DNA from: Chrysemys picta bellii
Lineage: Eukaryota
NCBI RefSeq assembly: GCF_011386835.1
Contig: NC_088810.1
Coordinates: forward strand, 2,232,001 to 2,296,000
DNA length: 64,000 bases
Direction of reading: 5' to 3'
This document shows, one piece after another, positions 2,399 through 54,700 of the stretch. Position 1 is the stretch's first letter, and the number at the start of each line of letters is the position of its first letter. The notes under the pieces were generated by a model that made no database searches, was not told the origin of the DNA, and saw only the letters and a list, made by a program, of their open reading frames with translations. The translations under genes and the position numbers were made by a program.

Positions 2399-5300
2399 AT
2401 GGAGGTTTCTCTTGTCGTCTGCATCCTCGCTGCTCTCCTGGCTACGGGTGAGTGGGGTCTGTTCCTACAGGGGCTGATTTCCTAACTTCTCCAACGGCCC
2501 AGAGCCGCCTGCCAGGTGAAACTGTTAACGCACGTAACCGAAAAGCAGCCACAGGATAACGGGGGCTGAGCTGGGGGCGTCAGAGTGACAACGTCCATGG
2601 AGGAGAGGGCTGGAAGTTACCAAGTCCCCGTGACAGCGAGTGAAACAATGGTGGAAATGGGAGGAAATATTTATTCTTTAAATCACTCGAACCGTGTTGT
2701 GACTGGGCACGTCTCAGAGCTGCGGAGGACAAGGACATTTTGAACAGGGACAAGGACATTCTTGTCTGTTGTCTGACAGGAAGCAGATCAAAACTTCCGT
2801 AAAAAGAGCTCAAAGTTATTTGAAGGGCATTTATATGTGATCCTCAGCTGGTGTCACGGGAGCGCAGCTGTACTGGAGTGGGTGGGGCCAGGGGCCAGCC
2901 AGTGTCAGGGGGGCCCAGCTGCACTGGAGTCGATGGCAGGTGTGACTTGGCCCTTGCTGCACCGCACCGGAGAGCCACACCAGGTCATACCCGCTGGGGA
3001 TCTCTCTGGGGTTTGTGAGGTGGGAAAAACCGCTGGGGAAATGAAATCTGCAGCAAAATCCAGGGAGACGCAGCCACAGAGCAGTGTGAAATGTCTGTAG
3101 CCAACCGGGACCATCGACAAAGCTGGGGCAGCGCATTGATGAGGGATGAGGGACACCAGGGCGCTGTACTCGGAGCTTCGTCACAGAGTAGGGTGACCAG
3201 ATAGCAAGGGTGAGAAATCAGGACAGGGGGTGGGGGGTAATTGGCACCTATATAAGATAAAGCCCCAAATATCAGGACTGTCCCTATAAAATTGGGACCT
3301 CTGGTCGCCCTACCACATTGCCCAGGGGAAGGTGAGGGAGGGACAAATCCAGGTGGCTCATGTTCTCTCTCCGTCCCCAGGGGCCTGTCTGCGGTGTGAG
3401 GTTTGCGATGGACCAGGAACCAGCTGCTCGGGCGACCTACAGACCTGCGATGTTGGGCAAGACACTTGTGGCATTGCTTGGACAGACTCCACATGGGGTA
3501 GGTGAGAGGGGCCCTAACCAACCTGGGTCAGAGAACAGGCTGGGGAGCTAGGACGCCTGGGTCCTATTCCAGTCCCAACTCTGGGAAGGGCGTGGGGTGG
3601 GTGGGTCTGAGCAGTGGTTAAGGAGCCAGGACACCTGGGTTCTATGTTAGACCCTGTGGGCTAGCTCCCCAACGGGGCCTTTCCCCTCTCCCCTTCTACA
3701 GTCGTGCCTGACCCCCTGGCTCCTGATGGGTCTCTCTCAGTCTCCCACATCCATGAGGCATGTCTATCCCACTGGGCTCTTGAGTGTATGGGGGGCACCC
3801 TTCCACCTCCTCCCGTGGCTGGGCTTTGTGCAGGGCCCAATCTGGTAGGGGCGCTCCGAGGGCATCCCCTGAATCAGGCTCCGCAGGGGAACACCTAGTC
3901 TGTGAATCCCCTTGCGGCTAAGGGGTGAGCGGGACACACGGCGTTGGGATTTCAGCGGCCCTGCATGTACCCTCGGTGGGAACTTTGACAACGAAAGGAC
4001 TTTATGGGCAGGAGATTCGGGGCCGGGGAGCTGGAGGATCTAAATGTTGGATGTAGGTGCTGGACTCGCTTATCTAGCCCTGTGGGACCTTGGGTAAGCT
4101 GCTTCCCCACCCTGAGCCTCAGTTTCCCCATGGGTAGAGGAAGGCTAATGGCACCTGGGTGTCGTTGTGAAGAGGGCGTCGATGGGATGGGAGTGGAAGG
4201 GGAATAAATCTCTGTCTTCTCCTCCTATGCAGTGGGAAGCAAGACTCAGACAGTTATCAAAAAGTGTGTGTCCTCCGACCTGTGTAAAGCCAGCCCCTTC
4301 TCTGCAAATTTTGGTGATGCAATGACAAGGACAAGCTTCAAATGCTGCATGGGAAATGCCTGCAGAACCACCAATATTACAGGTACTTCTCCCCATCTCT
4401 GCATCTCCTCCTCCATCCCACAGCACCTCCCGCTGCCTGGAACCCACCCCAAGTTAGCTTCCTGAGACTGGTCCTCCGACCCTGCAGGGGGCGCCCCATT
4501 GAATAACACTGAGCCTGTGTGCAGGTGGAGTTTAGTGGGCGGGGCTCTAGGCTGCCTCCAGGTGTGAACCCAGCTGGCCCCACCCGGGGCGGGGTCCAGG
4601 GCTCCCTGCGGCAAACCTCTCCTCTGCCCCTGCTGCCTCCAGCGACCCCGGAGCTACAGCTCCCCCTGCAGGGGGCACCCAGGGCTGAGCTGTGCAGCCC
4701 CCAGCTGCTCTCCCTGCCCCGACGCCGCCTGGGGCGCGTCCCCCGAGCTGACTGCGTTTGCTCCACTTCTTCCCAGTGCCCCCGGCTGACCCCAAACCCA
4801 ACGGCCGGCGCTGCCGTGGCTGCTACGCGATGAACGCTGATCATTGCAATGAGCAAACCATAAATTGTACTGGATCCGAGACCCAGTGTATTGATGCCAC
4901 CGCGACCATAACAATTGGTAACTTCTGTTCATTCATTCTGGGGTTATTTTTCCTTTGTTGTTTCTCGCCCACCCCCTGTAGGGTTGCAGTGAGTCACTCT
5001 TTGGCGTCACTAAGTGAAGGGTATTGGCTGCAGATCAGGACGCCTGGGTCCTATTCTCAGCACTGGGCTTAGGTGTGACCTTGGGCCAGTGTCTTCCCCT
5101 CCCTGTGCGTCTGGTTCTCCTCCCATCCGTTTCCTGTGTCGAGTTTAGTCTCTAAGCTACTCGTGATAGGGACTGGCTTAGTCTTGGCGGCCCCTGTTGT
5201 GCCAGGCGCTGCACAGACCTTAGATGGAGATTGGGGTCCCCTCTTGTACCTGATGCTAAAGGACTCCTGGTGAGATACAGTCCTTGCCCCCAAAAGCCTG

Positions 5301-5991
5301 CAATCTAAATAGGCAAAAGAAGGATCGTTCTCCCCATTTAAAAAATGGGGAAACTGGAACAGTTTGTGCCATGACTTGCCTAAATTCTCACAGGGAGGCT
5401 GTGGCAGTCCCATAATGGTGCCTTAAGTCACTACAAAGCCACCCTTCTTAGAGATCCCACCGCTGCCACCAGCACTGAGCTGCTGCTGCTAGATGAGCCG
5501 GCAAGGGCTATAACTGGCCTGACCCAATCCGGGTACTGACGGTGGTCTCTAGATCGGGGCTGTGAGTGATTTGTTCACGGACACACCGTGAGCCTGCGTC
5601 AGAGCGCAGGAGAAAGGGAATCCATGTAGGCCCAGACAGGCTGGGGGGGAGCAGAGCAGATGGGGAGATGTAGGCTGCGTGGCATCCTGGTGGGGCACTG
5701 GGGGTGGGGGGTGTTGTGTCTTAATCCAGCTTGAATAGCCTGACAAAAATTGCCTCCTCCCCCCTCCCCCCCACAGGTGGACATGAAAAGCAGACTGTCA
5801 TGAAGGGCTGCGCTTCCAAGTCCATCTGCATCATGGCACAAGTGGCTTCGCAGATGTTCACAGATATCAGTGTAGATCTAACTGAGGTCGAATGCACAGA
5901 GGCCTCCGGCGCGGCGGGCGTGGCTCCGGGACCAGCTGGACGCCTCCTCCCAGCCCTCTCTGGGCTTCTCCTGCTAAAGCTTCTCTCCTGA
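2399..5991 (+). CDS. Gene 1: two-LU-domain, GPI-anchored PLA2 inhibitor gamma / PINLYP-like protein. Coding exons 2399-2447, 3381-3497, 4233-4382, 4777-4917, 5777-5991
   Basis: Kozak caccATGG; all introns GT-AG and phase 1. Spliced ORF reads MEVSLVVCILAALLATG-ACLRCEVCDGPGTSC...CCMGNACRTTNIT-VPPADPKPNGRRCRGC...-GGHEKQTVMKGCASKSIC...LLPALSGLLLLKLLS*, with 10+8 Cys, a signal peptide and a hydrophobic C-terminus. AATAAA at 6116-6121. Confidence 0.93.
3189..3312. mobile_element. hAT (Blackjack-type) MITE in gene 1 intron 1
   Basis: TIRs TAGGGTGACCAG / CTGGTCGCCCTA. Degenerate 8-bp TSD (tcacagag / ccacattg). Absent at the matching site in the gene 3 and gene 5 introns. Confidence 0.75.
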
Positions 5992-15713: not shown

Positions 15714-18705
15714 ATGGAGGCTTCTCTTGTCGTCTGCATCCTCGCTGCTCTCCTGGCTACGGGTGAGTGGGGTCTGTTCCTACAGGGGCTGATTTCCTAA
15801 CTTCTCCAGCGTACCAACCGCTCAGAGCCACCTGCCGGGTGAAACCGTTAATTTAATGTAACTGATCATCAGCCACAGAATAACGGGGGCTGAGCTGGGA
15901 GCGTCTGGGTCCGAGGAGGAGAGGGCTGGAAGTCACAAAGTCCCCATGACAAGTGAAACAACGGGAGCGAATATTTACTCTTTAAATCACTAAAATGTGT
16001 CCTGACTGGGCAGTTTCAGAGCTGGCCAAGGGCCTTCCTGACAGGGGATTGTCTCTGCTCTGAAAGGCAGATCTGAATTTCAGTTCCAGGAGCTCAAGAC
16101 GATATAAAAGGCATTTCTGCAGGATCCCCACCCGGGGTCAGTCGGCCATAGTGCGTTGGTATCAATGGGGCCAGATCGAAGCTGGGGTCAGTTAAATTCA
16201 AGGGAAGGGACAAATCCTAGCTGTGTCATGTTCTCTCTTCTTCCCCAGGGTCCTGCCTGCAGTGTGAGGTTTGCGAAGGCCAAGGAACCAGCTGCACGGG
16301 CACCATGAAGACCTGCCCAGCTGGGCTGGACTCTTGTGCCATCTCTCTGACAATGGCTACATTGGGTAGGTGAGATGGAGCCTAACCAACCTGGGTCAGC
16401 GAGCAGGCTGGGGAGCCAGGATGCCTGGGTTCTAGTCCCTCCTCTGGGGCGGGGACTTCAGCCCAGATCCCTCCCCTCCTACGGTCGTGCCTGGTTTCCG
16501 GGGTGTGTGGGTGTGTCTGTTTCCCCTCTTGAAGCCGCCCCATATTGTTTAACTATTTCAAACATGCCCTGGAACCTGATCACCCACGTCCACAAAGAGT
16601 GTCCAACCCACTGGGTATCCGGGGGACCACCCCACCCCCATCTCCTCCGCTGGCTGGGCTTTATGCAGGGCCCGATCCGGTGGGAGTGCTCCAAGGGCGT
16701 CTCCTGGATGAGGCCCCGCAGGTGATATCAGCACGGGGGAACGCCTAGTTTGGGAATCCCACCATGGCTCAGGGGCGAGCAGGACGCACGGCGTTGGGAT
16801 TTCAGTGGCCTGGCATGTACCCACTGGTGGAAACTTTGGCAACGAAAGGGCTTTATGGGCCGAAGATTCGGGGCCCCCAGGGTTACGCGGCAGCTGAGTG
16901 GGGAGCTGGGGGATGTAAATGCTGGATTTAGGATTTAGAAAGCTGAAATGGCTTTCTCTAGCCCTGCGGGACCTCGGATTAGTCGCTTCCCCTCTCTGTG
17001 CCTCAGTTTCCTCCTGGCTAGAGGAAGGCTAATAGCACCTGGGTGTCGTTGTGAAGAGGGCGTCGATGGGGTGGGAGTGAAAGGGGAATATATCTCTGTC
17101 TTCTCCTCCTGTGCAGCGGGAGTGAACACCCAGCGCATTCACAAGGGCTGTGTGATGTCCAGCCAATGTAGAACCGGCCCCATCTCTATGAATTTGGGGC
17201 AGGGAATGACAACAAGGATGGGCGTCGCCTGCTGCGTGGGAGACGCCTGCAGAACAACCACCATTACAGGTACCTCTCCCCATCTCCGCCTCTCCTCCCC
17301 ATCCCCTGCACCTCCTGCCCCACGTTACCTTCCTGGGCCTGGGCCTCCTGCCCTGCAGGGGGCTCCCCAGGGAATAACACTGAGCCCCTGGGTGGGTGGA
17401 GTTTAGTGGGCGGGGCTTTAGGCTCCCACCAGGTGTGAACCCAGCTGACCCCACCCGGGGCGGGGTCCAGGGCTCCCTGCTGCAAACCTCTCCCCTGCCT
17501 CTGCTGCCCCCGGTGTCCCCAGAGCTACAGCTCCCCCTGCAGGGGCACCCAGGGCTGAGCTGTGCAGCCCCCAGCTGCTCTCCCTGCCCCGACGCCGCCT
17601 GGGGCGCGTCCCCCGAGCTGACTGCGTTTGCTCCGCTTCTTCCCAGTGCCCCCGACTGACACCAAACCCAACGGCCAGCGCTGCCCAGCCTGCTATGTGA
17701 TGAATGCTGGTCAATGCAATGAACAAATCATAGAGTGTACTGGATCTGAGACCCGATGTCTTGATGCTGCTGGAACCATAACAAGTGGTAACTTCAGTTC
17801 ATTTATTCTGGGGTTATTTTTCCTTTGTCCCCCCGCCCCCGTGCATAGGGCAGAAGCAAAACGCTGTGTCGGTTCCACGAGGTCAGGGGTTCACAAACTG
17901 TGGGTCAGGACTCGAAAGTGGGTCTCGACCTTATTTTAATGCCAGACGCTAACGACTCCTCTGAAGAAACCATCCCTGCTGCCAAAGAGCCTGCAATCTG
18001 AACAGGCAAAAGAAGGATCGTTCTCCCCATTTTAAAGATTGGGGAAACTGAGGCACGGAGCAGTGCCGTGACTTGCCCAATGTCACACAGGAAGGCTGTG
18101 GCAGGGAATTGAACCTAGTTTTGTGGAATCACACCATGGTGCCATCACTCACTACAAAGCCACCCTGCGTAGAGATCCCAGCGCTGCCACCAGCACTGAG
18201 CTGCTGCTTTGTAGATGAGTGGTGGGGCTAGTATAGGCCTGATCCATTATGAATACTGTTGGGGGCTCTAAGTGACATGCCCAAGGGCACACAGTGTGTC
18301 TGCCACAGAGGAGGAGGGGGATGCCATCCAGGCCCAGACAGGCTGGGGGGAGCAGAGCAGACAGGGAGACGGAGGCTGGGGGGGAGCTTGGTGGGGCCCT
18401 GAGGAGGGGGAAGCTGTTGTGTCCAAGTCCAGCTCAAAGAGTGAAGCTGCTTCCTTGCCACAATCAACTGCTTCCCTCCCGCCCCCGCAGGTCGAAACCC
18501 TGTGCAGATGGTCACGAAGGGCTGTGTTTCCCAGTCCATCTGCAACCAGCTACAAGTGAATTCGGGAACCGTTGCAGGGATCAATGCAAGTTTAACCACG
18601 GCCAAATGCACAGAGACCTACGGTCCGGCGGGCGGGGCACCAGGAGCAGCCGGGCTTCTCCTCCCGGCCCTCGCCGGGCTCCTCCTGCTGAATCTTCTCT
18701 CCTGA
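15714..18705 (+). CDS. Gene 2: two-LU-domain PLA2 inhibitor gamma / PINLYP-like protein. Coding exons 15714-15762, 16249-16365, 17117-17269, 17647-17787, 18491-18705
   Basis: Same exon sizes and phases as gene 1 (49/117/153/141/215 nt). Reads MEASLVVCILAALLATG-SCLQCEVCEGQGTSC...CCVGDACR...CPACYVMNAGQC...LLPALAGLLLLNLLS*. AATAAA at 18818-18823. Confidence 0.93.
17990..18130 (+). mobile_element. MIR-like SINE in intron 4, shared by all five paralogs (also about 5310-5420, 23190-23290, 40140-40230, 50630-50710)
   Basis: gggaaactgaggcac...gtgacttgcccaa.gtcacacag core in the same intronic position and orientation in each gene. Confidence 0.65.
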
Positions 18706-21630: not shown

Positions 21631-22085
21631 TAGGACAGGGATTCTCAATCTTTTTCATTCTGAGCCCCCCACCTCCAACATGCTATAAAAACTCCACGGC
21701 CCAGCTGTGCCACCACAACTGTTTTTCTGCATATAAAAGCCAAGGCTGGCATTAAGGGGTAGCAAGACGGGCAATTGCCACAGCGGGCACCGCGAAGCTA
21801 AATTGCTCAGGCTTCAGCTTCAGCCCCAGGGATTGTAGCTCCTGGCCTGTGCTGCCACATTTCACCACTAGAGGTCACTCTAAGACTAATTGACTTCTTG
21901 ACGGCCCCACCCACTAGAGTTAAAATTTCCTCCCACAAAATCAATTAAAAATTTCCAAAGACTTTGGTCTCCAGTTTGTTTTATTAAGCGGAACAATACA
22001 AAGGGGAAGCGAATCCAGGCGGGAGCCCAGAGCCCCTGGGAGGGAAGAGCGGCTGCAGAGAGGGGCAGACACAGGCAGCAGGACC

Positions 22086-22534: not shown

Positions 22535-24989
22535 AGCAGAGGCATTACTGAGTGCGGTTCGGCCATTGCACTGGGTGGGAAATCAGGAGAGAAGCGTTAG
22601 CAGGAGGAGCCCAGTGAGGGCGGGAAGGAGGAGCCCGGCTGGTCCCAGAGCGGTGGTGGCTGCGCTGGTGGCCGCTGTGCATTTGGCCATGGTTAGATCT
22701 CCACTGAACCCTGCAAAGGTCACAGACCCTGCTTCTATCTGGGTGCAGACAGACGCGGTAGCGCAGCCCTTCATGGCGGTCTTCCTGGCAGTTCCACCTG
22801 CGGGCGAGGGGGAGAAGGAGATGGTCAGTGTGAGGGGCACAGCTCCACTCCTTGAGCCAGACAAGGACACAACCACCTGCCCCCGTCTCAGCTCTGAGCC
22901 CTGCCTAGGCCCCCACCGCCTCCATCTTCCCTTCGGCTCTGCTCCACCCAGCATGTGTGGCCCTGAACGGCCTCCCCCTTCTCCTGTACTGTGACACGGA
23001 CTCACTGTATGCCCTTGGACAAGTCACTTGCAGCCCCGGTCTAGAGCCCACCCATGACACCCGGATTGAATCAGGCCTGTATGAGACCGCTGTTCATCTA
23101 GCAGAGCAGCAGCTCCCTGTTGGTGGCAGAAGTGGGATCTGAAAGAAGGGTGGCTTCGTAGTGCGTTAAGGCACCATGATGGGACTCTGCAAAACAGGGG
23201 TCAGTTCCCCAGCCCTGCCACAGCCTTCCTGTGCGACCTTGGACAAGTCACGGCTGTACTCTGTGCCTCAGTTTCCCCATCTTTAAAATGGGGAGAAAGT
23301 TCCCCACTACACCTATTGAAATTGTAGGCTCTTTGGGGTCTGGACTATATCTCCCTATGAGACATTTAGTGCCCAGCACAACACGGATCCCTGATCTTCG
23401 CTGGGGTTCTGTTCAGTGCCCGGCATGACAGGGGCTCCCAGGACTAAACCAGCCCCTGCCACAAAGAGTTTACAGGCGAAACTATACACAGGCAACAGAT
23501 GGGAGGAGCACCAGAGGCACAGGGAGGGGAAGACACTGGCGCAAGGTCCCACTGGAGGCCAGTGCTGGGAACAGAACCCAGGAGTCCTGATCTGCAGCCG
23601 AAATCTTTCCCTAGCAGCCGCCACCCAGCGTCTCGCTTCTGCCCTATGAGAGGGGGGGGCACAACAAAGGAAAATAACCCCAGAATAAATGAACAGAAGT
23701 GACCTGATTTTAGGGTCCCGGTGATCTCGACACATTGGGTCTCGACTCCAGTACAATTTATGGTCTCTTCACGGCACTGCTCAGAGGACAGAGAGTAGCA
23801 GCCACGGCAGATTCGGCCATTGGGTTTGGTGTCAGCCGGGGGGCACTGGGAAGAAGTGGAGCAAACGCAGTCAGCTCGGGGGACGAGCCCCAGGCGGCGT
23901 CGGGGCAGGGAGAGCAGTTGGGGGCTGCACAGCTCAGCCCTGGGCGCCCCCTGCAGGGGGAGCTGTAGCTCTGGGGACACCGGGGGCAGCAGGGGCAGGG
24001 GAGAGGTTTGCAGCAGGGAGCCCTGGACCCCACCCCGGGTGGGGCCAGGCGGGTTCACACCTGGGGGCAGCCTAAAGCCCCACCCACTAAACTCCACCCA
24101 GCCAGGGGCTCAGTGTTATTCCATGGGGCGCCCCCTGCAGGGTGGGAGGACCAGGCTCCGGAAGCTAATGTGGGGCAGGTTCCTGGCAGCAGGAGGTGCA
24201 GGGGATGGTGGAGAAGAGGTGGAGCTGGGGAGATGTACCTAAAATGGGGGATGGTATGCAGGCATCCCCTTGGCAGCAGGTGAAGCTCGTCCTTCTTGTC
24301 TTTCCCATCCCAAAGTTCATAGGGAAGGGGCTGTCTTTACATTGGCTGGATGTCGCACAGCCCATGATAATGATCTGGGTCTCTCCAGCTGCACAGGAGG
24401 ACAAGTCCGAGATTTAGTCCCCTTCCACTCCCACCCCATCAAGGCCCTCTTCACAACGACACCCATATGCCATTAGCCTTCCTCTCTCTACCCATGGCAC
24501 AGAGAGGGGAAGTGACTCCCCCGACTTCCCACAGGGCTACACTAAATTTTAGCACCTAAATCCAGCATTTAGATCCTCTAGCTCCCCACTCATCTGCTGC
24601 CTAACCCCGGGGGCCCCGAATCTCCTGAGACACCCACCCGGAAGCCAGGGGGCCAGGCACGACCGTAGGAGGGGAGAGATCTGGGCTGAAGACCTCAACC
24701 CGATTCAGGCCGAGTGGGGATTTGAACTTGTCTCCCTCAGGGTCCAGCTGAGTAGGGTGACCAGCTCGCAAGAGTGAAATATCAGGACACATTGGGCGAG
24801 CGGGGCGGGGGGAGGGGAGAGGACGACAATGACAATGACAGACACAGGTGCACAGAGCCATGAGAGGGGGCCCTAGGAAGCTAGAAGACGGGTTGTACGG
24901 CCCCTGCTGCAGTCCGCACCTCAAGCCACAGGGCAAGGACACCTATGGAATTCAATGAGAATTTTGCATGTGAATTGATGTACCTAGTT

Positions 24990-29961: not shown

Positions 29962-30234
29962 TTGCAAGATTTCACTGGAATGTTTTACAATATAGAGCAG
30001 CACAATGCTGATTCCATTGATATCGTTGAGCAATTCAGGCTGATTTTATTTCAGCCCACAGCTTAATAGTTTTCAATACTATAGATCACAATTTTCAGCT
30101 CAGTTGGTCTGAACATGCAGAGGTTTAAAATTGCTATGCTCTAAACTGTATATTAACTCCAATGTTATAAACCTGCATGTCAGAGAACTGTGTGCCACTA
30201 CTACTAGACAGTGGCACAGGGCAATTCAGTGTGA

Positions 30235-30500: not shown

Positions 30501-30519
30501 GTCCTGAGTGGGATGGGGA

Positions 30520-32100: not shown

Positions 32101-33128
32101 TCCCCCCAGAGGGACCTGCCAGGGGGCCAGTGAGCCCAGCAGTGCCCACCTGGAGCGGCTCCCAGGAAGAATCCAGCAGGCAGGTCCCTCCCAGTCCCTC
32201 TGGCCCCTTCCTAGGGTCGGGTCGGGTCGAGGGGAGGGGGGCGGCGGGGGCTCTCTGCCGGAGTCTACAAGCCCCGCCCCGCTGCAGCATGCAGGGGAGT
32301 GAAACCTCCTCACTGCCTCTCCGTGTGCCAGGGCAGGGGCAGGGCTGTGCTCTCTGCAGGCTCCTGCCGGCCAGGCGGGGGCCCTGTGGGCGCGCCGGGA
32401 GCTCAGCTGCGCGCTGCCCCAGGGCCCAGGGGGAGGAAAGGTGAGTGGCGCTGGTGGCGCCGGCTTGCCGCGGTCCCCCTCATATAGGGTGACCAGACGT
32501 CCCGACCAGTGTAAGGTCGGGACGCGGGACAAGTCCCCTAAAATCGGGACTGTCCCGATAATATCGGGACGTCTGGTCACCCTACAGCTGAGCCCCTAGC
32601 TGCTGGGGTCTCCTAGCAGCCCCTCCTCCACAGCCGTCATTCGCAAGGAAGGGCTGACCCGGGCCACACCCCGGATTCCCAGCGAGGGGTTCCCAGCTGT
32701 AGATCCCAAGCAGAGCTGGGTGCCTCCATTCAGCCCAGACTTAGGGGCTTAACTCCGGGCGAGGGTCGGGGCTTAAGCCACACCCCTTTCCTCAGCATTT
32801 CCTATTGACTGGTTTAGGCAGTTGTCTGCTCTGCGTGCTGGCTCTGGCAGATCCCCTCCTCAGGTACCTCCCTCTCCCCATGCACTGTACAGGGAGCCGG
32901 GCCCCGACCCACTGGCTGGCGAGTCACCTGGGGGTTCGGCATCGCAATGCTGAGCCGAAGGCCCCATTGGTGAGCTAGTCACAGGGTCTGGCATAGAACC
33001 CAGGCGTCCTGGCTCCTTAACCGCTGCTCAGACCTACCCACCCCACGCCCTTCCCAGAGCTGGGACTAGGAGAGGATCCAGATGTCCTGGCTTCCCAGCC
33101 TGTTCACTGGCCCAAGTTGGGTGGGGTC

Positions 33129-34493
33129 TAGGGTTACCATCCATCCGTATTTCCCCAGACATGTCCGGCTTTTTCGTCTTTAAATAGCCGTCCGGGAGGA
33201 ATTGGTAACAAGGTTAAAAGGTCTGGGATTTTTCCTCCTCCCCTCCCTTCCATGCAGAATGCGGCGCGGCTGACTGGGCGGCTGGGCCTGATTGAGCCGC
33301 TCCCATTGGCCTCCAGCAGCCAGAGCCCCTCCCCTGCTCACCTCTGCTGCCTCAGCACTCTGCGGGGGAGGCATGTTTTGCCTCCACGTGGAGGAGCCAG
33401 CATCTGACCGGCATGGGCATGGTAAGGGGAGTCCCGGGGGGGCAGTCAGGGAGCAGGGGGAGGGTTGGATGGGTCCCCGGCCTCCACCTGCTACCCCCCT
33501 CTGCGCGTCCCCCCCACACCTCTCCCATGCCTGCTTGTGCTGCTGGAGTAGCACATTCCTACGCCCTCCCGGCAGCAACTGCTGTCTTCTGCCCCAGGGT
33601 CCTAGTGCCCCCTATCCACTCATGGCAAAGCAGGCTGCCCTTACCCTGCCCATCCACCCTAACCCTGAGCCTCTCCAACGCCCCAAACCCCTCATCCCCA
33701 GCCCCAGACCTCATCCCCCCGCACCCTAATCCTCTGCCCCAGCCCTGAGCCCCCTCCTGCATCATGAACCCCTCATCCTGAGCCCCAACCCTCATCCCCC
33801 CACACCCTAATCCTCTGCCCCAGCCCTGAGCCCCCTCCTGCATCATGAACCCCTCATCCTCATACCCACAGCCCTCACCCCTGCACCCCTCCTATCCCCA
33901 AACTCCCTCCCAAACCCTTTACCCCTTCCCACACCCCCCTCCTGCCCTCAAACTCTCTCCCAAAGCCTGCACCCCCTCCCTTTTCACTGCCTCCCACCCC
34001 CAAACTCCATCCCAGAGCCTGCACCCCTCACCCCCTCCTGCACACCCACCCCCTGCCCCAACCCGGAACCTGAACCCAGCACCCAAACTTCATCCCAGAG
34101 CCTGCACCCTGCATCCCTCCTGCGCCCTAATCCCCAGCCCAGGACCCGCACCCCAGACCTCCTCCCCCCACCCAATCCCCCTCCCAGAGCCTTAGGCAGG
34201 TGGGGGGGCGGAGTTGGGGGAGCGGGTTCTGGGCACCACCAAAATTTCTACAAACCTGCCACCCATGTATAAGGGTCGGGGCAGTCAGGGGACAGGTAGG
34301 GTCCTAGTGGGGCAGTTAGTGTGGGGGGTTCTCAGGAGGCGGCAGTCAGGGGACAAGAAGCGGGGGGGGGTTGGAGGTTCTGAGGGGGGCAGTCAGGGGG
34401 TGGGAGGGAGTGAATGGGGGTGGGGCAGGGCTAGAATGGGGCTTCCCCCCCCCCAGTGTCCTCTTTTTTGATTGTGGAAATATGGTAACCCTA
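33129..34493. mobile_element. hAT MITE (1365 bp) 20 bp from the gene 3 exon 2 donor
   Basis: TIRs TAGGGTTACCAT / ATGGTAACCCTA; perfect 8-bp TSD GTGGGGTC (33121-33128, 34494-34501). Confidence 0.9.
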
Positions 34494-36146
34494 GTGGGGT
34501 CCCTCTCACCTACCCAATGTGGATTCTATCCAAAAAATGCCACAAAAGTCCTGCCCAGCACCGCAGGTCTGTCGGTTGCCCGTGCATCTGATTCCTTCGC
34601 CTCTGCAAACCTCACACTGCAGACAGGCCCCTGGAGCCAGAGAGAGAACATGAGCCACCTGGATTTGTCCCTCCCTCGCCTTCCCCGGGGCTCTGTAGGG
34701 AAGCTCCGATTACAGCGCCCTGGGGTCCCTCATCCACCGTGCTGCCCCAGTTCAGTCCTTGTTCCCCGCTGGCTACAGACATTTCATGCTGCTCAGGGGC
34801 TGCATCTCCCCAGGTTCGCTGCAGATTTTAGTTCCCCAATGGGTTTTTCCCACCTCACAAACCCCAGAGAGATCCCCAGTGGGTGTGAGCTGGTCTCACT
34901 CTCAGCAAGGGCCAATTGACACCTGTCATCAAATCCAGTGCAGCTGCGCCCCCCCCTGACACCGGCTGGGCCCTGCCCCACTGACTCCAGTGCAGCAGTG
35001 CCCCATTGACACCAGCTGGTCCCTGGCCCCATTGACACCGGCTGGGGATCGCATTGACCCGCCCTTCAGATTCCCTTGAGCTCCTGCTACTGAAATTCAG
35101 ATCTGCTGCCTGTCACAAAACAGACAATCCCTGTTCGAAATGCCCTTGGCCTCTGGCCAGCTCTGAAACGTGCCCAGTCATGACTGAGTTTTAGTGATTT
35201 AAACTGTAAATGTTTCCTCCCATTTCCACAATTGTTTCACTCGCTGTCACAGGGACTTTGTGACTTCCAGCCCTCTCCTCCTGGGACGTTGTCACTCTGA
35301 CGCCCCCAGCTCAGCCCCCGTTATTCTGTGGCTGCGTTTCGGTTACGTGCGTTAACAGTTTTACCCGGCAGGCGGCTCTGAGCTGTTTATACATTGGAGA
35401 AGTTAGGAAATCAGCCCCTGAAGGAACAGACCCAACTCACCCGTAGCCAGGAGAGCAGCGAGGATGCAGACGGCAAGAGAAGCCTCCATGGTGTTGGGGA
35501 AGCAGTAGATCGGCACTGGGGTCTGTGGTGCAGCCAAATCTCCAGTTCGGGGGTTTGTCACAGACGGTCTGAAATGAGATAAGAAGGGAACTTGCACATG
35601 TAGGAGTCAGTTGATAGAGTGGGAGGAACCACAGAGCCATTTGCCACAGTTCTGGGGTAGCCGCGCCTCTGACCCCTTCCTGGCTGGTATGTTCATGGTA
35701 CCCACACAGAGAAGTCACAGACAAATATCAAATACTCCTGCTGGAAGGTTGCAGTGTAAAATGCCTTTCTTTCTGCGAATCCAACAAAATTACACACAAG
35801 AACCCAAATCAAGATAGAGGCGAAGCAGGCTGCTTTATACAACAGAAAGAGACAAAGCCAGTGGCTCTCTAAACAGAGGGTGACAAAGCAGGCTGCTCCC
35901 TACGGCAGGAAGAGACAGCTCACCCACCTTGATTCTACTCCTGGCTCTAGGAGGGGACTGGGACCTAGTGGTCAGAGAAGTGGGGCCTGGAGCCAGGACT
36001 TCTCGGTTCTATCGCTGGCTCTGGGAGGGGAGTAGGTTCTCATGGTTGGACCAGGAAGGCTGGGGCCAGGACTCCGGGGTTCTATTCCTGCTCTGGGAGG
36101 GGAGTGGGGTCTAGCGGTTAGAGCACCAACAGACCAGAGGGATGTG

Positions 36147-39512: not shown

Positions 39513-42500
39513 TCAGGAGAGAAATTTCAGCAGGAGGAGCCCAGTGAGGGTGGGAAGAAGGAGCCCGGCTGGTCCCAGAGCTGTGCCGGCCGCGCTGGTG
39601 GCTGCTCTGCATGTGTGCTTGGGTAGATCTCCACGGATCCCCAGGAAGGTCCCAGAACCTGCATTTACCTGGGAGCACACGGACTCGGTAACGCAGCCCT
39701 TCATGATGATCTTAATGGTATTTCCACCTGTATGGGGGGGGGAGGAGGAAGGAGGCGATCGGGGTGAGGGGCGCAGCACCATTCCTTGACTGGACTAAGA
39801 AATAACAGCCCCCCCTTCCTCAACTCTGCCCCTGTGACCCCCACTGAGCCCCCCCCCAGCCTCCATCTCCCCATCTCCTCTGCTCTCCCCAGCATGTCTG
39901 GCCCTGGATGGCCTCCCCCGCTCCTTTAATGTGACACAGACTCACAGGGTGTCCATGAACAAGTCACTTGCAGTCCCGACCTAGATCCCGCCAACAACAC
40001 CTGGATTGACTCATGCCTGTTTTATCCCCACAGTTCATCTAACAAAGCAGCAGCTCCCTGTTGGTGGCAGCAGTGGGATCTCTAAGAAGGGTGGCTTCAC
40101 AGTGAGTTAAGGCACCATGATGGGACTTTGCAAAGCTAGGCTCAGTTCCGAGCCCTGCCACAGCCTCCCGGTGTGACCTGGGGCAAGTCACGGCACTGCT
40201 CAGTGCCTCTGTTTCCCCATATGTTAAATGGGGAGAATGATCCCCACTATGCCTACAGAGATTGCAGGCTCTTTGGGGCACAGACTTTATCTCCCTATGA
40301 GTTTTTAGAGCCCAGCACAGCCTGGGTCCCTTTTCTTTCCTGGGGGTCTGCGCAGTCCAGGCATGAGAGGGGCTCCCAATACTATATCAGACCCTACCAT
40401 GAAGAGCTTAGAGATTGAACTATAGACAGGCAATGGATGGAGGAGAACCAGAGGAACAGGGAGGGGGAGACACTGGCGCAAGGTCACACCGGAGGCCAGC
40501 GCTGGGAACAGATCCCAGGTGTCCTGATCTGCAGCCGATACCTTTCCCTAGTGGCCTCCACCCAGCATCTCGCTTCTGCTCTACGCGGGGGGAAAAGAGC
40601 GGAGGAAAAATACCCCCAGAATAAATGAACGGAAGTTACCAGATTTTAGGGGCCCGGCAACGTCCAAACAGTGGGTCTCGGCTCCAGTACACTGTATGGT
40701 CTCTTCACGGCACTGCTCAGAGGACAGAGAGTAGCAGCCACGGCAGCTCCGGCCATTGGGTTTGGTGTCAGCCGGGGGCACTGGGAAGAAGCGGAGCAAA
40801 CGCAGTCAGCTCGGGGGACGAGCCCCAGGCGGCGTCGGGGCAGGGAGAGCAGCTGGGGGCTGCACAGCTCAGCCCTGGGTGCCCCTGCAGGGGGAGCTGT
40901 AGCTCCGGGGGCAGCAGGGGCAGGGGAGAGGTTTGCAGCAGGGTGGGGTCAGCTGGGTTCACACCTGGTAGCAGCCTAGAGCCCCGCCCACTAAACTCCA
41001 CCCACCCAGGGGCTCAATGTTATTCAATGGGGCGCCCCCTGCAGGGTGGGAGGACCAGTCTCAGGAAGTTAACGTGGGGCACGTTCCAGGCAGCAGGAGG
41101 TGCAGGGGATGAGGGAGGAGCTGCAGAGATGTACCTTTAACAGAGTCCGGTGTGCAGTTGTCTGTCTGGCAGCAGGTGATGCTCATCCTTCTGGCCTTTG
41201 CCGTCCCAAAATTCATGGAGATGGCTCCAGCTTCACATTGGCTGGGTGACAAACAGCTCTTGAGAACGTTCTGGGTCTTCCTTCCCGCTGCACAGGAGAA
41301 GAAGTCTGAGATTTATTCCCATTCCACTCTCACCCCATCGACGTCCTCTTCACAACGACGGCCCTGTGCCATTAGCCTTCCTCTACCCATCGGGAAACTG
41401 AGGCACACAGTGAGGAAAGTGACTCACCCCACATCCCGCAGGGCTAGAGAAAGCAATTTCAGGAGCAAAATCCAGCATTTAGATCCTCCAACTGCCTACT
41501 CAGCCGATGCCTAACCCTGGGGGCCCCGAATCTCCTGCCCATAAAGTCCTTTTGTTGCCAAAGTTTCTACCAGTGGGTATGTGCAGGGCCACCCAAACCC
41601 CAACACCATGCATCCCGCTCACCCCTGAGCCACGGCGGGATTCACAGACTAGGCCTTAACCTGACGATATCACCTGCGGGGCCTGATCCTGGGGACACCC
41701 TCAGAGCACAACCAATGGATCGGGCCCTGCACAAAGCCCAGCCAAGGCAGGAGATGGAGGGGGGTTGCCTCCCATATACCCAAGAGCCCAGGGGGTCGGA
41801 TGCTCCCCATGGATGTGGGGGAATCAGGGTCCAGAGAATGTTTAACTATTTCATACAATGTGGGGCAACTTCAAAAAGGGAGACTGAGAGACCCCCTCGG
41901 AGGCCAAGGGGTCGGGCACCACCGTAGGAGGGGAGAGATCTGGGCTGAAGACCCCGGCCAAATTCGGTTCCCACTTGGCTCCCCCATGGCCCAGCTGAGC
42001 GCCCAACCGCTGGGGTCTCCTGGAAGCCCCTCTTCCACTGCCGTCATAGTCAAAGAAGGGCTGACCTGGTCCAGAAGCTGGACTCCCGGTGAGTGGTTCC
42101 CGGCTGTGGACCCCAAGCAGAGCTGGGCACCTCCGTGCCGCCGGGACTCAGGGCCGAACTTAGGGTGAGGGGCGGGGCTTAGGCCACACCCCTCTCCTCA
42201 GCATTTCCTATTGGCTGGCTTTTGTGGATCCCATCCTCAGGCACCTCCCTCTCCCCATGCACACAACGGGGAGCCCGGCCCCATCCCACTGGCTGGCAAG
42301 TCACCTGGAGTTCGGCATCGCAGTGCTAAGCCAAAGGCCCCGTTGGGGAACTAGCCACAGGGTGTGGCATAGAGCCCATGCGTCTTGGCTCCTTAACCGC
42401 TGCTCAGACCCACCCACCCCACGCCCTTCCCAGACCTGGGACTAGGAGAGGACCCAGGCGTCCTGGATCCCCACCATCTTCACTGACCCATGTTGAGTAG

Positions 42501-43098
42501 GGTCCATCTCACCTACCCGCTGTGTCTTCTGTCAGAGTGATGCCACAAGAGTCTTCCCTATTTCGGCAGGTATCTAGATCGCCCGTGCATCTGGTTCCTG
42601 ATCCATCGCAAACCTCACACCGCAGACCGGCCCCTGGAGACGGAGAGAGAACATGAGTCCAGTGCAGATGTGCCCCCTGACACCGGCTGGGGATCACATA
42701 TAAATGCCCTTCAAATAGCCTGTCACACAACAGACAATCCCCATTCGAAATGCCCTTGGCCTCTGGCCAGCTCTGAAACATGCCCAGTCACAACACGATT
42801 CTAGTGATTTAAACTGTAAATATTTCCTCCCATTTCCACAATTGTTTCACTCGCTGTCACAGGGACTTTGTGACTTCCAGCCCTCTCCTCCTGGGACGTT
42901 GTCACTCAGACGCCCCCAGCTCAGCCCCGTTATTCTGCGGCTGCTTTTCGGTTACATTAACTAACAGTTTCATCCGGCAGGCGGCTCTGAGCTGTTGGCA
43001 CGTTGGAGAAGTTAGGAAATCAGCCCCTGTAGGAACAGACCCAACTCACCCGTAGCCAGGAGAGCAGCGAGGATGCAGACGGCAAGAGAAGCCTCCAT
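39513..43098 (-). CDS. Gene 4: two-LU-domain PLA2 inhibitor gamma / PINLYP-like protein. Exons 43098-43050, 42633-42517, 41287-41135, 40780-40640, 39727-39513
   Basis: Intact spliced ORF MEASLAVCILAALLATG-AGLRCEVCDGSGTRC...CCQTDNCT...CRGCYSLSSEQC...LLPTLTGLLLLKFLS*. GT-AG phase-1 introns. AATAAA (- strand) at 39368-39373. Confidence 0.93.
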
Positions 43099-50017: not shown

Positions 50018-53000
50018 TCAGGAGAGAAACTTCAGCAGGAGGAGCCCAGCGAGGGCTGGGAAGAGGAGCCTCACTGGTTCCAGAGCTGTGCCGGTCGCGC
50101 TGGAGGCTGGTGAGCATCTGGCCGTGGTTACCTCTTCTTTGATCCCTGCGAAGGCCCCTGAACCCTCATTTATTTGGGCACAGACATACTGAGTACCACA
50201 GCCCTTCATGACGGTCTTCGTGGCAGATCCACCTGCATGTGGGGGAGGAAAGGAGGTGATCAGTGTGAGGGGTGCCGATCCATTCCTTGAACTGGACCAG
50301 GACACAACAACCTGCCCCTCCTCAGCTCTGCCCCTCTGAGCCCCGCCGAGACCCCCACCGCCTCCCCTTTGGCTCTGCTGCCCCCAGCATGTCTCCCCCT
50401 TCTCCTTTACTGTGACACAGACTCACTGTGTGTCCTTGAATAAGTCACTTGCAGCCGTGATCTAGAGCACACTGAGGATACCGAGATTGGATATGGCCTG
50501 TATTAGCGACACCACTCATGCTGCAAAGTAGCAGCTGCCTGTTGGTGGCAGCGGTGGGATCTTTATGAAGGGTGGCTTCATAATGAGTTAAGGCATCATG
50601 ATGGGATCCTGCAAAATTGGGGTCAATTCCTAGCTCTGCCACAGCCTTCCTGTGTGACCTTGGGAAAGTCGTGTCACTACTCTATGCCTCCGTTTCCCAG
50701 TCTCTGAAACTAGGAGAATGATCCCCACTATGCCTACAGAGATTGTGTAATGCCGACAGACGCCGGGTGTTGGCGGGCGGGATCGAACCTGGGACCTCTG
50801 GAGCTTAGTGCATGAGGCAAAAGCCAACAGGCTATAGAGCAAACTCCTTCTCACTAAGTGGTCTCAGTGCCACTACAGTGGACAGGACACCACACCCAGG
50901 AGGTGGGTGGGTTACAGTTGCAGGCTCTTTGGGGCATGGACTATATCTCCCTATAAGTCTTTAGCGCCCAGCAGAGTATGGGTCCCTTATCTTCGCGGGG
51001 AGTCTGTTCAGTGCCCGGCACGACTGGGTCTCCCAATATTAAACCAGTCCCTGCCACGGAGACCTTAGTGACTAAACTGTAGACAGGCAATGGACGGAGG
51101 AGAACCAGAGGCACAGGGCGGGGAAGACACTGGGCCAGGGTCACACCAGAGGCCAGCACTGGGAACAGAACCCAGGTGTCCTGATCTGCAGCCGATACCT
51201 TTATTTAGCGGACGACACGCAGCATCTCGCTTCTGCCCTTGGGGGCGCGGGACAGCAAAGGAAAAATAACCCCAGAACAAATGAACGGAAGTTACCAGAA
51301 TTTTGGGGCCCGGCGATGTCCATACATTGGGTCTCGGCTCCTGTACACTGTATGGTCTCTTCACGGCACTGCTGAGAGGACGGAGCGTAGCAGGCTGGGC
51401 AGCGCAGGCCGTTCAGGGTGGTGTTAGCCGGGGGCACTGGGAAGAAGTGGAGCAAACGCAGTCAGGTCGGGGGACGCGCCCCAGGCGGCGTCGGGGCAGG
51501 GAGAGCAGCTGGGGGCTGCACAGCTCAGCCCTGGGCGTCCCCTGCAGGGGGAGCTGTAGCTCCGGGGTCGCTGGAGGCAGCAGGGGCAGGGGAGAGGTTT
51601 GCAGCAGGGAGCCCTGGACCCCGCCCCGGGTGGGGTCAGCTGGGTTCACACCTGGGGGCAGCCTAAAGCCCCGCCCACTAAACTCCACCCAGCCAGGGAC
51701 TCAGTGTTATTCCATGGGGAGCCCCCTGCAGGGCGGGAGGACCAGTCTCAGGAAGTTAATGTGGGGCAGGTTCCAGGCAGCAGGAGGTGCAGGAGAGGGG
51801 AGATGTACCTTTAACAGGCTCCGGTGTGCAGGCGTCCGTCTGGCAGCAGGCGATGCTCGTCCTTTTCATCATGCTCTTCCCAAAATTCGTTGAGACGAAC
51901 CTGGCGTTACATTGGCTGGGTGTCGCACAGCCCTTGATAATGGTCTGGGTCTTCTCTCCCCCTGCACAGGAGAAGACAGAGATTTTCCCCCCGTCCATTC
52001 CCAGCCCAGTGACGCCCACTTTACAATGATGCCCATGTGCCATTAGCCCGCCTCTACTCATGGGGAAACTGAGGCACGGGGAGGGGAAGTGACTCATTCG
52101 AAGTCCCGCAGGGCTAAAGAAACCGATTTCAGCACCTAAACCCAGCCCTTAGATCGTCCTGCTCCCCACTCAGCTGCCGCAAATCTCCTGCCAGAGTTCC
52201 CACCAGGGGGGTACATGCTGGGCTGCTGAAATCCGAACACCGGGCGTCCAGCTCACCCTTTAGCCGTGGTGGGATTCACAGACTCATTGTTTCCCTGCTG
52301 ATCTCACCTGCAGGGCCTGACACAGGAGATGCCCTTGGAGCACGCCCACTGGATCAGGCTCTGCACAATGCACAGCCGGGGGGGGAGACGGCGGGGGGAG
52401 AGGTTGCTCCCCCCCCCCCCGCATACCCAGGAGCCCTGTTTGTCGGATGCTCCCAGTGGATGTGGGGGATCAGGTTCCAGGGAATGTTTAACTATTTCAT
52501 ACTATGTGGGGTGGCTTCAATAGGGGAGACGTACAGAGACCCGGGGCCAGACATGACCATAGGAGGGGAGAGATCTCGGATGAAGTCCCCAATTCGGGCC
52601 AAGTGGGGATCTGAACTTGCCTCCCCCAGGGCCCAGCTCAGCGCCAGGCCACTGGGGTCTCCTAGCAGCCCCTCCTCCACTGCTGACATTGACAAGGAAG
52701 GGCTGACCCGGATCAGATATCGGACGCCCAGCGAGGGGCTCCGGGCTGTGGACCCCAAGCAGAGCCTGGCGTCTCTGTGCAGGTGGGACTTAGTGGCCAA
52801 ACTTTGGGTAAGGGACAAGGCTTTGGTCACTCCCCTTTCCTCGACATTTCCTATTGGCTGGCTTAGGTGGCTCCCACTCAGTGGCCTCTGGTGCATCCTC
52901 TCCTCAGGTGCCTCCTTCTCCCCATGCACCGTACAGGGAGCCGGGCCCCGGCCCACTGGCTGGCGAGTCGCCTGGGGGGTTGGCATCGCAGTGCTGAGCC

Positions 53001-54700
53001 GAAGGCCCCATTGGGGAGCTAGCCACAGGGTCTGGCATAGAACCCAGGTGTCCTGGCTCCTTTGCTGCTCAGACCCACCCACCCCACTCCTTTCCTGGAG
53101 CTGCGATTAGGATAGAACCCAGGCGTCCTGGCTCCCCAGACTGTTCCCTGACCCACGTTGGGTAGGGTCCCTCTCACCCACCGTGTGTAAATTCTGTTAG
53201 AACGACGCCACAAGAGTTTTGCCCAGCAGTGCAGGTCAGTAGGTTCCCCTTGCAACTGTTTCCTTCTTCTTCACAACGCTCACACTGCAGACAGGCCCCT
53301 GGGGACGGAGAGGGAACATGAGCCACCTGGATTTCTCCCTCCCTCGCCTTCCCCGGGGCTCGGCGGGGAAGCGCCGGGTACAGCGCCCTGGGGTCCCTCA
53401 TCCGGGGCCGGTGCAACCATTTAGACGACCTAGGCGGTTGCCTAGGGCGCTAGGATTTGGGGGGCGCCATTTTCTTCGGCAGCAACCGCAGCGGCCGGAT
53501 CTTCGGCCGCCCCGGTCGCCGCCGGCATTTAGGCGGAGGGAGCTGGGGCAGTGGAGCACGGGGAGGGCCGCCTGCAGCAAGGGGGGGGGGGCGGCACGCA
53601 GGGGAACTCCCCGTCCCAGCTCACCCCTGCCCCGCCTCCTCCCCGAGCACGCCATCGCTGCTTCACTTCTCCCGCCTCCCAGGCCTGATTGGCGCTGCAA
53701 GCCTGGGAGGCGGGAGAAGTGAAGCAGCGACGGCGTGCTCGGGAAGGAGGCGGGGCAGGGGTGAGCTGCCACGGGGGGGGTGCCTCAGGGTGGGGGGTGG
53801 GGAGCTGCCATGGGGGGGGTGTCTCAGGGTGGGGGGTGGGGAGCTGCCGCGGGGGGGGGGGTGTCTCAGGGTAGGGGGTGGGGAGCTGCCGCGGGGGCGC
53901 CAACTCAGGGCGGGGGCTCAAGGATGGGCGCAAGGTGGAAGTTTTGCCGAGGGCGTGAAACATCCTTCCACCGGCCCTGCCCTCATCCACCACGCTGCCC
54001 CAGTTTGGTCCCTGGCCCCCGCTGGCTACAGACACTTCACGCTGCTCGGGGGCTGCGTCTCCCCGGGATCGCTGCAGATTTTAGTTCCCCGGTGGGTTTT
54101 CCCACCTCACAAACCCCAGAGAGATCCCCAGCGGGTGTGAGCTGGTGTCGCTCTCCAGTGCGGTGCAGCAAGGCCGAGTCCCACCTACCATCAAGTCCAG
54201 TGCAGCTGCGCCCCCCTGACATCGACTGGGCCCTGGCCCCCCTGACTCCAGTGCAGCTGCGCCCCCCTGACACCGGATGGGGATCGCATTGACCCGCCCT
54301 TCAGATTCTCTTGAGCTCCTGCTACTGAAATTCAGACCCGCTGCCTGTCACACAACAGACAATCCCGTTCGAAATGCCCTTGGCCTCTGGCCAGCTCTGA
54401 AAGGTGCCCAGTCACGACACAGTTCTTGCAATTTAAATTATAAATATTTCCTCCCATTTCCACAATTGTTTCACTCACTGTCACAGGGACTTTGTGACTT
54501 CCAGCCCTCTCCTCCTCGGACGCCCCAGCTCAGCCCCCGTTATCCTGTGGCTTCTTTTCGGTTACGTTCAGTAACAGTTTCATCCGGCAGGCGGCTCTGA
54601 GCCGTTGGAGAAGTTAGGAAATCAGCCCCTGTAGGAACAGACCCCACTCACCAGTAGCCAGGAGAGCAGCGAGGATGCAGACAACAAGAGAAGCCTCCAT
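50018..54700 (-). CDS. Gene 5: two-LU-domain PLA2 inhibitor gamma / PINLYP-like protein. Exons 54700-54652, 53298-53182, 51961-51809, 51436-51296, 50232-50018
   Basis: Intact spliced ORF MEASLVVCILAALLATG-ACLQCERCEEEGNSC...CCQTDACT...CPACYAPSSQQC...LFPALAGLLLLKFLS*. AATAAA (- strand) at 49874-49879. Confidence 0.93.
50746..50916. mobile_element. 171-bp TG...CA element with tRNA-like box in gene 5 intron 4 (second copy starts at 63958)
   Basis: TGTAAT...GTTACA ends; near-TSD attg/gttg; empty site gagattgcaggc in gene 4 (about 40260); GGTTCGATCCC on the - strand. Confidence 0.75.
53403..53979. mobile_element. hAT MITE in gene 5 intron 1
   Basis: TIRs CGGGGCCGGTG / CACCGGCCCTG; perfect 8-bp TSD CCCTCATC; empty site in gene 3 (about 34728). 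Confidence 0.9.

Follow-up and report, generated by a model that had tools for sequence, protein, structure and literature searches.

In snakes, the gamma-type inhibitors of phospholipase A2 (PLA2), PLI-gamma (Pfam PF02988; represented here by Notechis ater NAI and Laticauda PLI-gamma A), consist of two tandem three-finger (LU) domains in one chain, end a few residues past the last Cys without a hydrophobic tail, and are secreted. Mammalian PINLYP has the same two-LU layout with 10+8 Cys, matches Pfam PLA2_inh and UPAR_LY6, and is likewise without a hydrophobic tail. The multi-LU proteins of the PLAUR cluster, such as uPAR, CD177, C4.4A (LYPD3) and TEX101, carry a C-terminal signal of the glycosylphosphatidylinositol (GPI) type; each of their LU domains is encoded by an exon pair (PMC6600238), and in the mammalian multi-LU GPI proteins a disulfide is missing from the first LU domain (PMC6600238; PMC6337849). 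In tetrapod two-domain three-finger proteins (2D-TFPs) and the sperm protein SPF, a 10C-TFP domain comes first and is followed by a second domain without the CCXXXXCN motif (Wilburn et al., PMC8904931), and PMF genes combine a hypervariable coding sequence with untranslated regions (UTRs) that are ~98% conserved (PMC8904931). SPF and PMF are secreted amphibian pheromone or sperm proteins, for which a tail or anchor is not reported in PMC8904931. Finally, snake genes for venom PLA2, three-finger toxins and serum inhibitors show at least as many replacement as silent changes, introns, signal peptides and flanks that are more conserved than the mature-coding exons, and tandem arrays with an inverted sub-block (PMC7150969). 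Here we explored how a locus of the painted turtle, Chrysemys picta bellii, compares with these systems. The window, 64,000 nucleotides of contig NC_088810.1 (positions 2,232,001 to 2,296,000; all coordinates below are those of the window), contains five paralogous two-LU genes, G1 to G5. Our findings support, with a probability of roughly 0.7, a model where this is an array of old, probably GPI-anchored paralogs with diversifying fingers, facing a putative fast-changing partner.

All five genes were located through the motif of their signal-peptide exon (starts at 2399 and 15714 on the + strand, and at 35489, 43098 and 54700 on the - strand), and their models were built from self-alignment, exon-wise blastn and splice-site inspection. 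They share a common architecture: five coding exons of 49, 117, 150-153, 141 and 215 nt, separated by phase 1 introns with GT-AG boundaries, of which one encodes the signal peptide, two encode LU1 (10 Cys), and two encode LU2 (8 Cys, without the terminal CC...C motif) plus a C-terminal segment. An earlier, sequence-only reading of the window had described a five-member array; the five paralogs are indeed found at the places it gave, but G3 is frameshifted and only four genes are intact and open as assembled, namely G1 (+, 2399-5991), G2 (+, 15714-18705), G4 (-, 43098-39513) and G5 (-, 54700-50018), with products of 223-224 residues. The two LU domains with 10+8 Cys that the same reading had recognised were confirmed, a layout common to snake PLI-gamma relatives and mammalian PINLYP, and its statement that all cysteines are kept holds for the scaffold: all 18 scaffold cysteines (10 + 8) are invariant in the five paralogs as well as in 20 turtle homologs. 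G4 lacks an additional Cys (the 19th, at position 19), which is probably the last signal-peptide residue, given that the Laticauda PLI-gamma A sequence starts directly after it. Pfam was searched exon by exon, with the database orthologs P0001-P0004 serving as full-length queries. Exons 2 and 3 matched PLA2_inh (19.6 and 26.2 bits, cut-off 22; profile positions 2-30 and 42-83), exon 4 matched UPAR_LY6, and the full-length ortholog P0001 scored above both cut-offs (PLA2_inh 44.2 bits, UPAR_LY6 49 bits). Thus, like snake PLI-gamma, the turtle genes have an LU1 with 10 aligned Cys that exceeds the PLA2_inh cut-off, and a similar signal peptide; the elapid NAI, however, has 6 Cys in LU2 versus 8 in the turtle genes.

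The C-terminal segment sets the turtle genes apart from both snake PLI-gamma and mammalian PINLYP. In all five it is 31 residues long, made up of small residues, a Pro/Gly spacer and a closing hydrophobic stretch of 15-16 residues, and is not followed by a cytoplasmic tail. A GPI-attachment signal has small residues at the omega site, then a polar spacer and a hydrophobic terminus, and the anatomy of the turtle segment suggests such a signal. The AlphaFold (AF2) model of P0001 (mean predicted local distance difference test score, pLDDT, 73) has two three-finger domains, a disordered stretch at residues 198-212 and a terminal helix. By Foldseek it matches uPAR (E 2e-6), CD177 (1e-5), C4.4A (8e-5) and TEX101 (7e-3), and CD177 is also the top sequence match in the PDB (phmmer, E 1e-6). 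The turtle genes are like the GPI proteins of the PLAUR cluster, their best structural matches, in being multi-LU, and the putative GPI-type signal at their C-terminus would be a further likeness; yet, unlike in the mammalian multi-LU GPI proteins, the turtle LU1 has its full 10 Cys and LU2 is the 8-Cys domain without the last pair. Their Cys columns fit, on the other hand, the 10C domain plus second domain without CCXXXXCN of tetrapod 2D-TFPs and SPF, which they further resemble in rapid evolution. The sequence-only reading had seen a tail typical of GPI signals in these paralogs and contrasted it with the secreted snake PLI-gamma; the anatomy of the tail fits such a signal, but the tail is no peculiarity of the array, being present in many sauropsid and salamander relatives.

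This wider distribution emerged from the database searches. At 99.6% identity, G1 differs in one residue from RefSeq protein P0038 of Chrysemys picta bellii: codon 27 (3407-3409), in finger I and hypervariable among paralogs, encodes Gly here and Glu in P0038, a difference that may be a polymorphism. A word search anchored on G5 exon 5 retrieved 224-residue turtle proteins, the Malaclemys one being 94% identical. Altogether 78-98 turtle homologs are already annotated, in RefSeq for many turtles and from all major lineages including Pleurodira and Trionychia, under the labels "PLA2 inhibitor gamma subunit B-like", "NAI-like", "PINLYP-like" and "CD177 antigen-like". Three Chrysemys members (P0026, P0063 and P0094) lie outside the window, and the family is therefore larger than five. 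Some relatives in the database contain the two-LU unit many times over, such as P0079 (397 aa, from Pelodiscus) and P0101-P0111 (up to 2604 aa, with 15 matched stretches); they may be multi-LU proteins of the CD177 type, or else gene models reading through tandem arrays. A word-index protein search with a 20-sequence profile returned turtle proteins only, and an exhaustive search of representatives returned 1157 cluster representatives at E ≤ 1e-3, twenty of which were named. Among these twenty, the tail is absent from Notechis NAI, lizard PLI-gamma-like, mammalian PINLYP and Pelodiscus PINLYP-like proteins, and present in alligator, bird, lizard, snake, tuatara and Ambystoma relatives; it is also conserved in >50 turtle homologs. 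In the alignment of the named relatives LU1 has 10 Cys and LU2 has 8 throughout, the LU2 of NAI being the exception, and the Pro/Gly spacer and Leu-rich end are homologous across the tail-bearing groups.

Phylogenetic analysis (FastTree, 126 proteins) recovered the turtle family as monophyletic (support 0.975), with a tail-bearing group of alligator, bird and lizard proteins as its sister. The family stands apart from the squamate clade of secreted PLI-gamma (0.97), where the snake proteins fall, and from the PINLYP clade (0.87), composed of mammalian PINLYP, Pelodiscus P0178 and tail-less gecko proteins. Two candidate identities were discarded on these grounds: the window genes are not PINLYP orthologs, mammalian PINLYP forming a separate clade and turtles having a separate PINLYP-like gene of their own, nor are they members of the PLI-gamma clade, the squamate secreted clade and the turtle clade being separate in the tree. 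We place them in the tetrapod PLI-gamma/PINLYP/SPF-like 2D-TFP superfamily, as the turtle clade of a widespread, annotated yet unstudied tail-bearing branch. Since turtles share the tail with relatives from alligators, birds, lizards, snakes, tuatara and salamanders, it is ancestral and has been lost in PLI-gamma and PINLYP, which makes the secreted snake PLI-gamma and PINLYP the derived forms. Within the turtle family, G1, G2, G4 and G5 each fall in an orthogroup of their own, with members from Chelydra, Gopherus, Mauremys and Emys (support 0.87-1.0); the paralogs are therefore older than the split of the cryptodiran families.

The evolution of these old paralogs has left the Cys scaffold, inter-domain linker, signal peptide and tail constant, and is marked by recurrent diversifying selection on the fingers of LU1 and LU2. 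Pairwise dN/dS (Nei-Gojobori method, NG86) ranged from 0.86 to 1.37 in the mature part and from about 0.3 to 0.9 in the tail, with the signal exon nearly unchanged. The site models, fitted with a self-written likelihood program (Goldman-Yang codon model, GY94, with F3x4 frequencies), gave a maximum likelihood omega under M0 of 1.12 for the whole coding sequence; the mature part had 1.27, and signal and tail together 0.60. Models with a selected class were strongly preferred, twice the log-likelihood difference (2ΔlnL) being 34.8 for M1a/M2a, 36.1 for M7/M8 and 34.8 for M8a/M8, with ~47% of the sites in the selected class at an omega near 2.5. The four intact genes alone gave a 2ΔlnL of 33.6, and the highest value among 20 data sets simulated under the fitted M1a was 7.8. 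When each domain was tested on its own best topology, 2ΔlnL was 25.9 for LU1 (omega class 4.0) and 10.3 for LU2. Forty-five sites had a posterior >0.95, spread over the fingers of both domains, with none among the 17 sites of the signal peptide, none among the 12 of the linker and a single one among the 16 of the hydrophobic tail. The mature part of the orthologs is 86-95% identical within Emydidae and 66-73% identical to Chelydra and sea turtles, a divergence that we judge fast for turtles. The accelerated evolution that the sequence-only reading had proposed was thus borne out by the codon analysis across paralogs, with a mature-part dN/dS of about 1 or more and significant site models, as was the expectation of a site-level omega above 1 in the finger loops, with selected sites lying across the fingers but not in the signal peptide.

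A second line of evidence comes from the comparison of exons with introns. In exon 2, G1 and G4 differ at 17 of 38 codons, 15 with a replacement and 2 silent, exactly as counted before. Kimura two-parameter (K2P) divergence between paralogs was 0.038 for exon 1, 0.19, 0.26, 0.077 and 0.32 for introns 1 to 4, and 0.28-0.39 for exons 2-5. The mature-coding exons exceeded the alignable introns in all ten gene pairs (0.278 against 0.191 on average; Fisher p between 9e-3 and 4e-8), so that two more of the earlier observations, almost invariant signal-peptide exons and mature exons that diverge beyond the introns, proved correct. The further remark that the introns align closely is well founded only for intron 3 and the beginning of intron 1; intron 4 has diverged about as much as synonymous sites. 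The observation is statistically solid, and both the exon/intron contrast and the dN/dS values support accelerated evolution. The pattern resembles that of the snake toxin and inhibitor genes, both in replacement changes at least as frequent as silent ones and in the greater conservation of introns and signal peptide; it is also like that of PMF, with variable coding exons beside a conserved exon 1 and conserved introns.

What the exon/intron contrast says about selection depends, however, on why exon 1 and intron 3 are so similar, and the alternative that survives best is that introns and exon 1 were slowed by gene conversion, rather than the exons accelerated, which would make the contrast uninformative on selection. 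Introns 2 and 4 (0.26 and 0.32) do roughly match the synonymous divergence of the exons (dS of about 0.25-0.45), and exon 1 and intron 3 fall far below it. Intron 3, alignable over nearly its full length, has about a quarter of the exon synonymous-site divergence, and retains its CpGs. Its last ~95 nt (4680-4776 in G1, and the homologous ends in G2-G5) are ~97% identical and GC-rich; a match to this conserved 3' end was not found in Rfam, and the stretch may represent either a conserved element or a hot spot of conversion. Among G1-G4, exon 1 is free of synonymous differences. Constraint is favoured by the conservation of its signal peptide in about 60 turtle proteins; yet, the emydid G5 signal peptide equals that of its paralogs, while another is found in the G5 orthologs of tortoises and geoemydids, a pattern that points to conversion at exon 1. 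For intron 3, homogenisation and constraint both stand. Gene conversion as the source of the contrast is a substantial possibility, though one that we hold at less than even odds: it covers the intron comparison only, the dN/dS values and site models being drawn from exon data alone, and conversion that spared precisely the finger exons would itself imply selection for diversity.

Diversifying selection on the fingers of anchored paralogs remains our preferred explanation, against which several points weigh. The site models presuppose a single tree for each alignment; gene conversion between the paralogs violates this and can inflate the tests, the signs of conversion at exon 1 being a case in point. 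As naive empirical Bayes estimates from an alignment of five sequences, the per-site posteriors are overconfident, the codon-model code was checked solely by the null simulation and its agreement with NG86, and selection along the orthologous lines is deduced from protein divergence only. The GPI reading draws on the anatomy of the tail and on the spacer and helix of a single AF2 model, that of P0001, and the ligand is putative. Moreover, a run search found the stretch in DNA runs of four organism labels, none recorded as RNA, and two small runs guessed to be RNA contain 7-8% of its words.

Under the preferred model, a mature protein of ~180 residues would be GPI-anchored on the outer face of the membrane, from which it could be shed, and its fingers would form a putative ligand-binding surface that tracks a fast-changing partner; the near identity of exon 1 and intron 3 would reflect gene conversion limited to segments that bind no ligand, non-coding constraint, or both. 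The fast change of the outward-facing parts points to an arms race with this putative partner. As to its nature, we would tentatively name a pathogen or some other immune ligand; a partner among gametes or chemosignals is possible but doubtful, as is something else altogether, and a PLA2 or other toxin is unlikely.

Two functional alternatives follow from the comparison with described systems. The first, that the array encodes gamete-surface or chemosignal 2D-TFPs (cf. salamander SPF; mammalian TEX101, LYPD4 and SPACA4) shaped by sexual selection or sperm-egg conflict, draws on a Cys pattern that is that of tetrapod 2D-TFPs and sperm SPF, and on the resemblance between the hypervariable coding sequence and conserved UTRs of PMF and the conserved exon 1 and introns found here (PMC8904931). 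TEX101 is among the structural matches, and the same tail occurs in the Ambystoma homolog. Yet a GPI anchor is not a reported feature of SPF pheromones (PMC8904931), and the Ambystoma homolog may or may not be an SPF, which leaves a reproductive role conceivable rather than probable. The second alternative, in line with the PLA2 binding that the sequence-only reading had thought possible, is that of membrane-bound PLA2 inhibitors, with fingers co-evolving with venom, pathogen or endogenous secreted PLA2s in the manner of snake serum PLI-gamma. LU1 exceeds the PLA2_inh cut-off, and the characterised proteins Notechis NAI and Laticauda PLI-gamma A have their Cys scaffold in common with the turtle genes; PINLYP is reported to be active in phospholipid metabolism (PMC12080810) and snake serum PLA2 inhibitors appear as a subject of molecular-evolution work (So et al. 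2008, in PMC7150969). A Pfam name is not, however, equal to an activity. PLA2 inhibition is a feature of snake PLI-gamma, whose squamate clade (0.97) is separate from the turtle clade. The closest solved relatives bind proteases or other proteins (uPAR-uPA, CD177-PR3), and the window is without a PLA2 gene. We thus regard inhibitors of PLA2 as an unlikely identity, and PLA2 inhibition as one among several possible functions.

Pure relaxed constraint, under which the array would drift with an omega near 1 through loss of function, could appeal to the average pairwise omega close to 1 and to the frameshift and transposon insertions of G3, but is very improbable and was rejected in view of the 18 Cys invariant in five copies and 20 turtle homologs, the four intact frames despite about 30% divergence, the retention of every splice site and of the poly(A) signals in 4 of 5 genes, a fit of M2a far above the nearly neutral M1a, and the retention of the paralogs as orthogroups across turtle families.

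Regarding the organisation of the array (table 1), two phylogenetic sub-groups lie on opposite strands, (G1,G2) on + and (G3,G4,G5) on -, tail to tail around 18706-22582, and a single inversion between the sub-groups is therefore deduced; a tandem array with an inverted sub-block is also seen in the snake toxin and inhibitor genes. G3 (-, 35489-22583) bears three marks of decay: a frameshift, an insertion in intron 2 and another in the 3'UTR. The intron 2 insertion is hAT-like, with a perfect 8-bp target-site duplication, CAGCTGAG. The 3'UTR (21986-22540) received a ~460-bp insertion starting ~45 nt past the stop, so that the AATAAA, otherwise expected near +138, lies at +597. Once the two codons hit by the frameshift are masked, the rest of the frame is open and every Cys is kept; judging by the sequence, G3 would be either a recently disabled copy or the product of an assembly error at the C-run. 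Within the hAT-like insertion, a 30-bp minisatellite (27933-29961; ~68 copies, 89% matches) explains why the GC skew peaks at 0.31 between 28 and 32 kb.

A local tblastn search of the window, with the paralog proteins as queries, brought up no LU exons beyond those of the five genes, a Pfam scan of ten long intergenic open reading frames yielded only a reverse-transcriptase fragment, and no Rfam family matched in the window (scanned outside 23251-23299); these scans being otherwise empty, the window holds no other genes, only repeats. The fragment, from a long interspersed element (LINE), lies downstream of G1 (9790-10542, -; RVT_1, E 2e-17). Weakly similar LINE pieces (~66%) occur downstream of G4 (38153-38625) and G5 (48687-49072), and the three may have belonged to the original duplicated unit. 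Tandem arrays of a 74-75-bp repeat, in both orientations, are found between the genes at 7485-7888, 12748-13269, 35940-36464, 44298-44776, 55109-55276, 56630-56819 and 62150-62571.

Table 1. Features of the five two-LU genes in the Chrysemys picta bellii window (window coordinates).
Feature	Position	Strand	Basis or remark
G1 exon 1 (start codon, signal peptide; phase 1 end)	2399..2447	+	motif search, gene model
G1 exon 2 (LU1 first half)	3381..3497	+	Pfam PLA2_inh profile positions 2-30
G1 exon 3 (LU1 second half)	4233..4382	+	PLA2_inh 26.2 bits vs cut-off 22
G1 intron 3, unusually conserved	4383..4776	+	intron comparison
G1 exon 4 (linker and LU2 first half)	4777..4917	+	UPAR_LY6 profile positions 1-37
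G1 exon 5 (LU2 second half, GPI-signal-like tail, stop codon)	5777..5991	+	gene model
G1 AATAAA	6116..6121	+	124 nt past stop codon
G2 exon 1	15714..15762	+	motif search, gene model
G2 exon 2	16249..16365	+	gene model
G2 exon 3	17117..17269	+	gene model
G2 intron 3	17270..17646	+	intron comparison
G2 exon 4	17647..17787	+	gene model
G2 exon 5	18491..18705	+	gene model
G2 AATAAA	18818..18823	+	112 nt past stop codon
G3 exon 1	35441..35489	-	motif search, gene model
G3 exon 2	34514..34630	-	gene model
G3 intron 2, 10.1 kb (G1, G2, G4 and G5: 0.7-1.2 kb)	24389..34513	-	intron comparison
hAT-like composite insertion, 7.8 kb, inside G3 intron 2	24753..32584	.	8-bp target-site duplication, 12-bp terminal inverted repeats
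G3 exon 3	24239..24388	-	gene model
G3 intron 3	23846..24238	-	intron comparison
G3 exon 4, 142 nt (141 in paralogs)	23704..23845	-	gene model
G3 six-C run (five C in paralogs); 1-bp insertion at exon 4 start, frame shifted	23838..23843	-	paralog comparison
G3 exon 5, open in original frame only	22583..22797	-	gene model
G3 conserved AATAAA, 597 nt past stop	21980..21985	-	displaced by 3'UTR insertion
G4 exon 1	43050..43098	-	motif search, gene model
G4 exon 2	42517..42633	-	gene model
G4 exon 3	41135..41287	-	gene model
G4 intron 3	40781..41134	-	intron comparison
G4 exon 4	40640..40780	-	gene model
G4 exon 5	39513..39727	-	gene model
G4 AATAAA	39368..39373	-	139 nt past stop codon
G5 exon 1	54652..54700	-	motif search, gene model
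G5 exon 2	53182..53298	-	gene model, Pfam exon search
G5 exon 3	51809..51961	-	gene model, Pfam exon search
G5 intron 3	51437..51808	-	intron comparison
G5 exon 4	51296..51436	-	gene model, Pfam exon search
G5 exon 5	50018..50232	-	gene model; 94% identity to Malaclemys P0001
G5 AATAAA	49874..49879	-	138 nt past stop codon

Exons that diverge faster than introns, together with a dN/dS above 1, form a signature for which snake toxins, the serum inhibitors of these animals and the pheromones of salamanders are the textbook cases. This toxin-like signature is now seen in an old turtle LU family, conserved in number and probably membrane-anchored, and it marks uncharacterised turtle genes as engaged in some molecular conflict. 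Unlike in the snake toxin systems, the host is a non-venomous turtle and the products are probably held at the membrane rather than secreted. The labels in use for sauropsid proteins, "PLA2 inhibitor gamma B-like", "NAI-like" and "PINLYP-like", are applied to a separate clade, one that bears the tail and belongs to neither PLI-gamma nor PINLYP. Turtles are a slowly evolving lineage, and old paralogs on such slow background rates offer a clean system to separate gene conversion from selection. The finding alone settles no long-standing question. More speculatively, turtles, and probably other sauropsids, might keep a set of germline-encoded, hypervariable, GPI-anchored two-LU receptors that recognise pathogens or gametes, with targeting signals and non-coding segments kept uniform by conversion or by a conserved intronic element, and with selection pushing the ligand-binding fingers towards ever greater difference; if true, this would mean that a toxin-like evolutionary regime acts on cell-surface receptors in a non-venomous, slowly evolving lineage.

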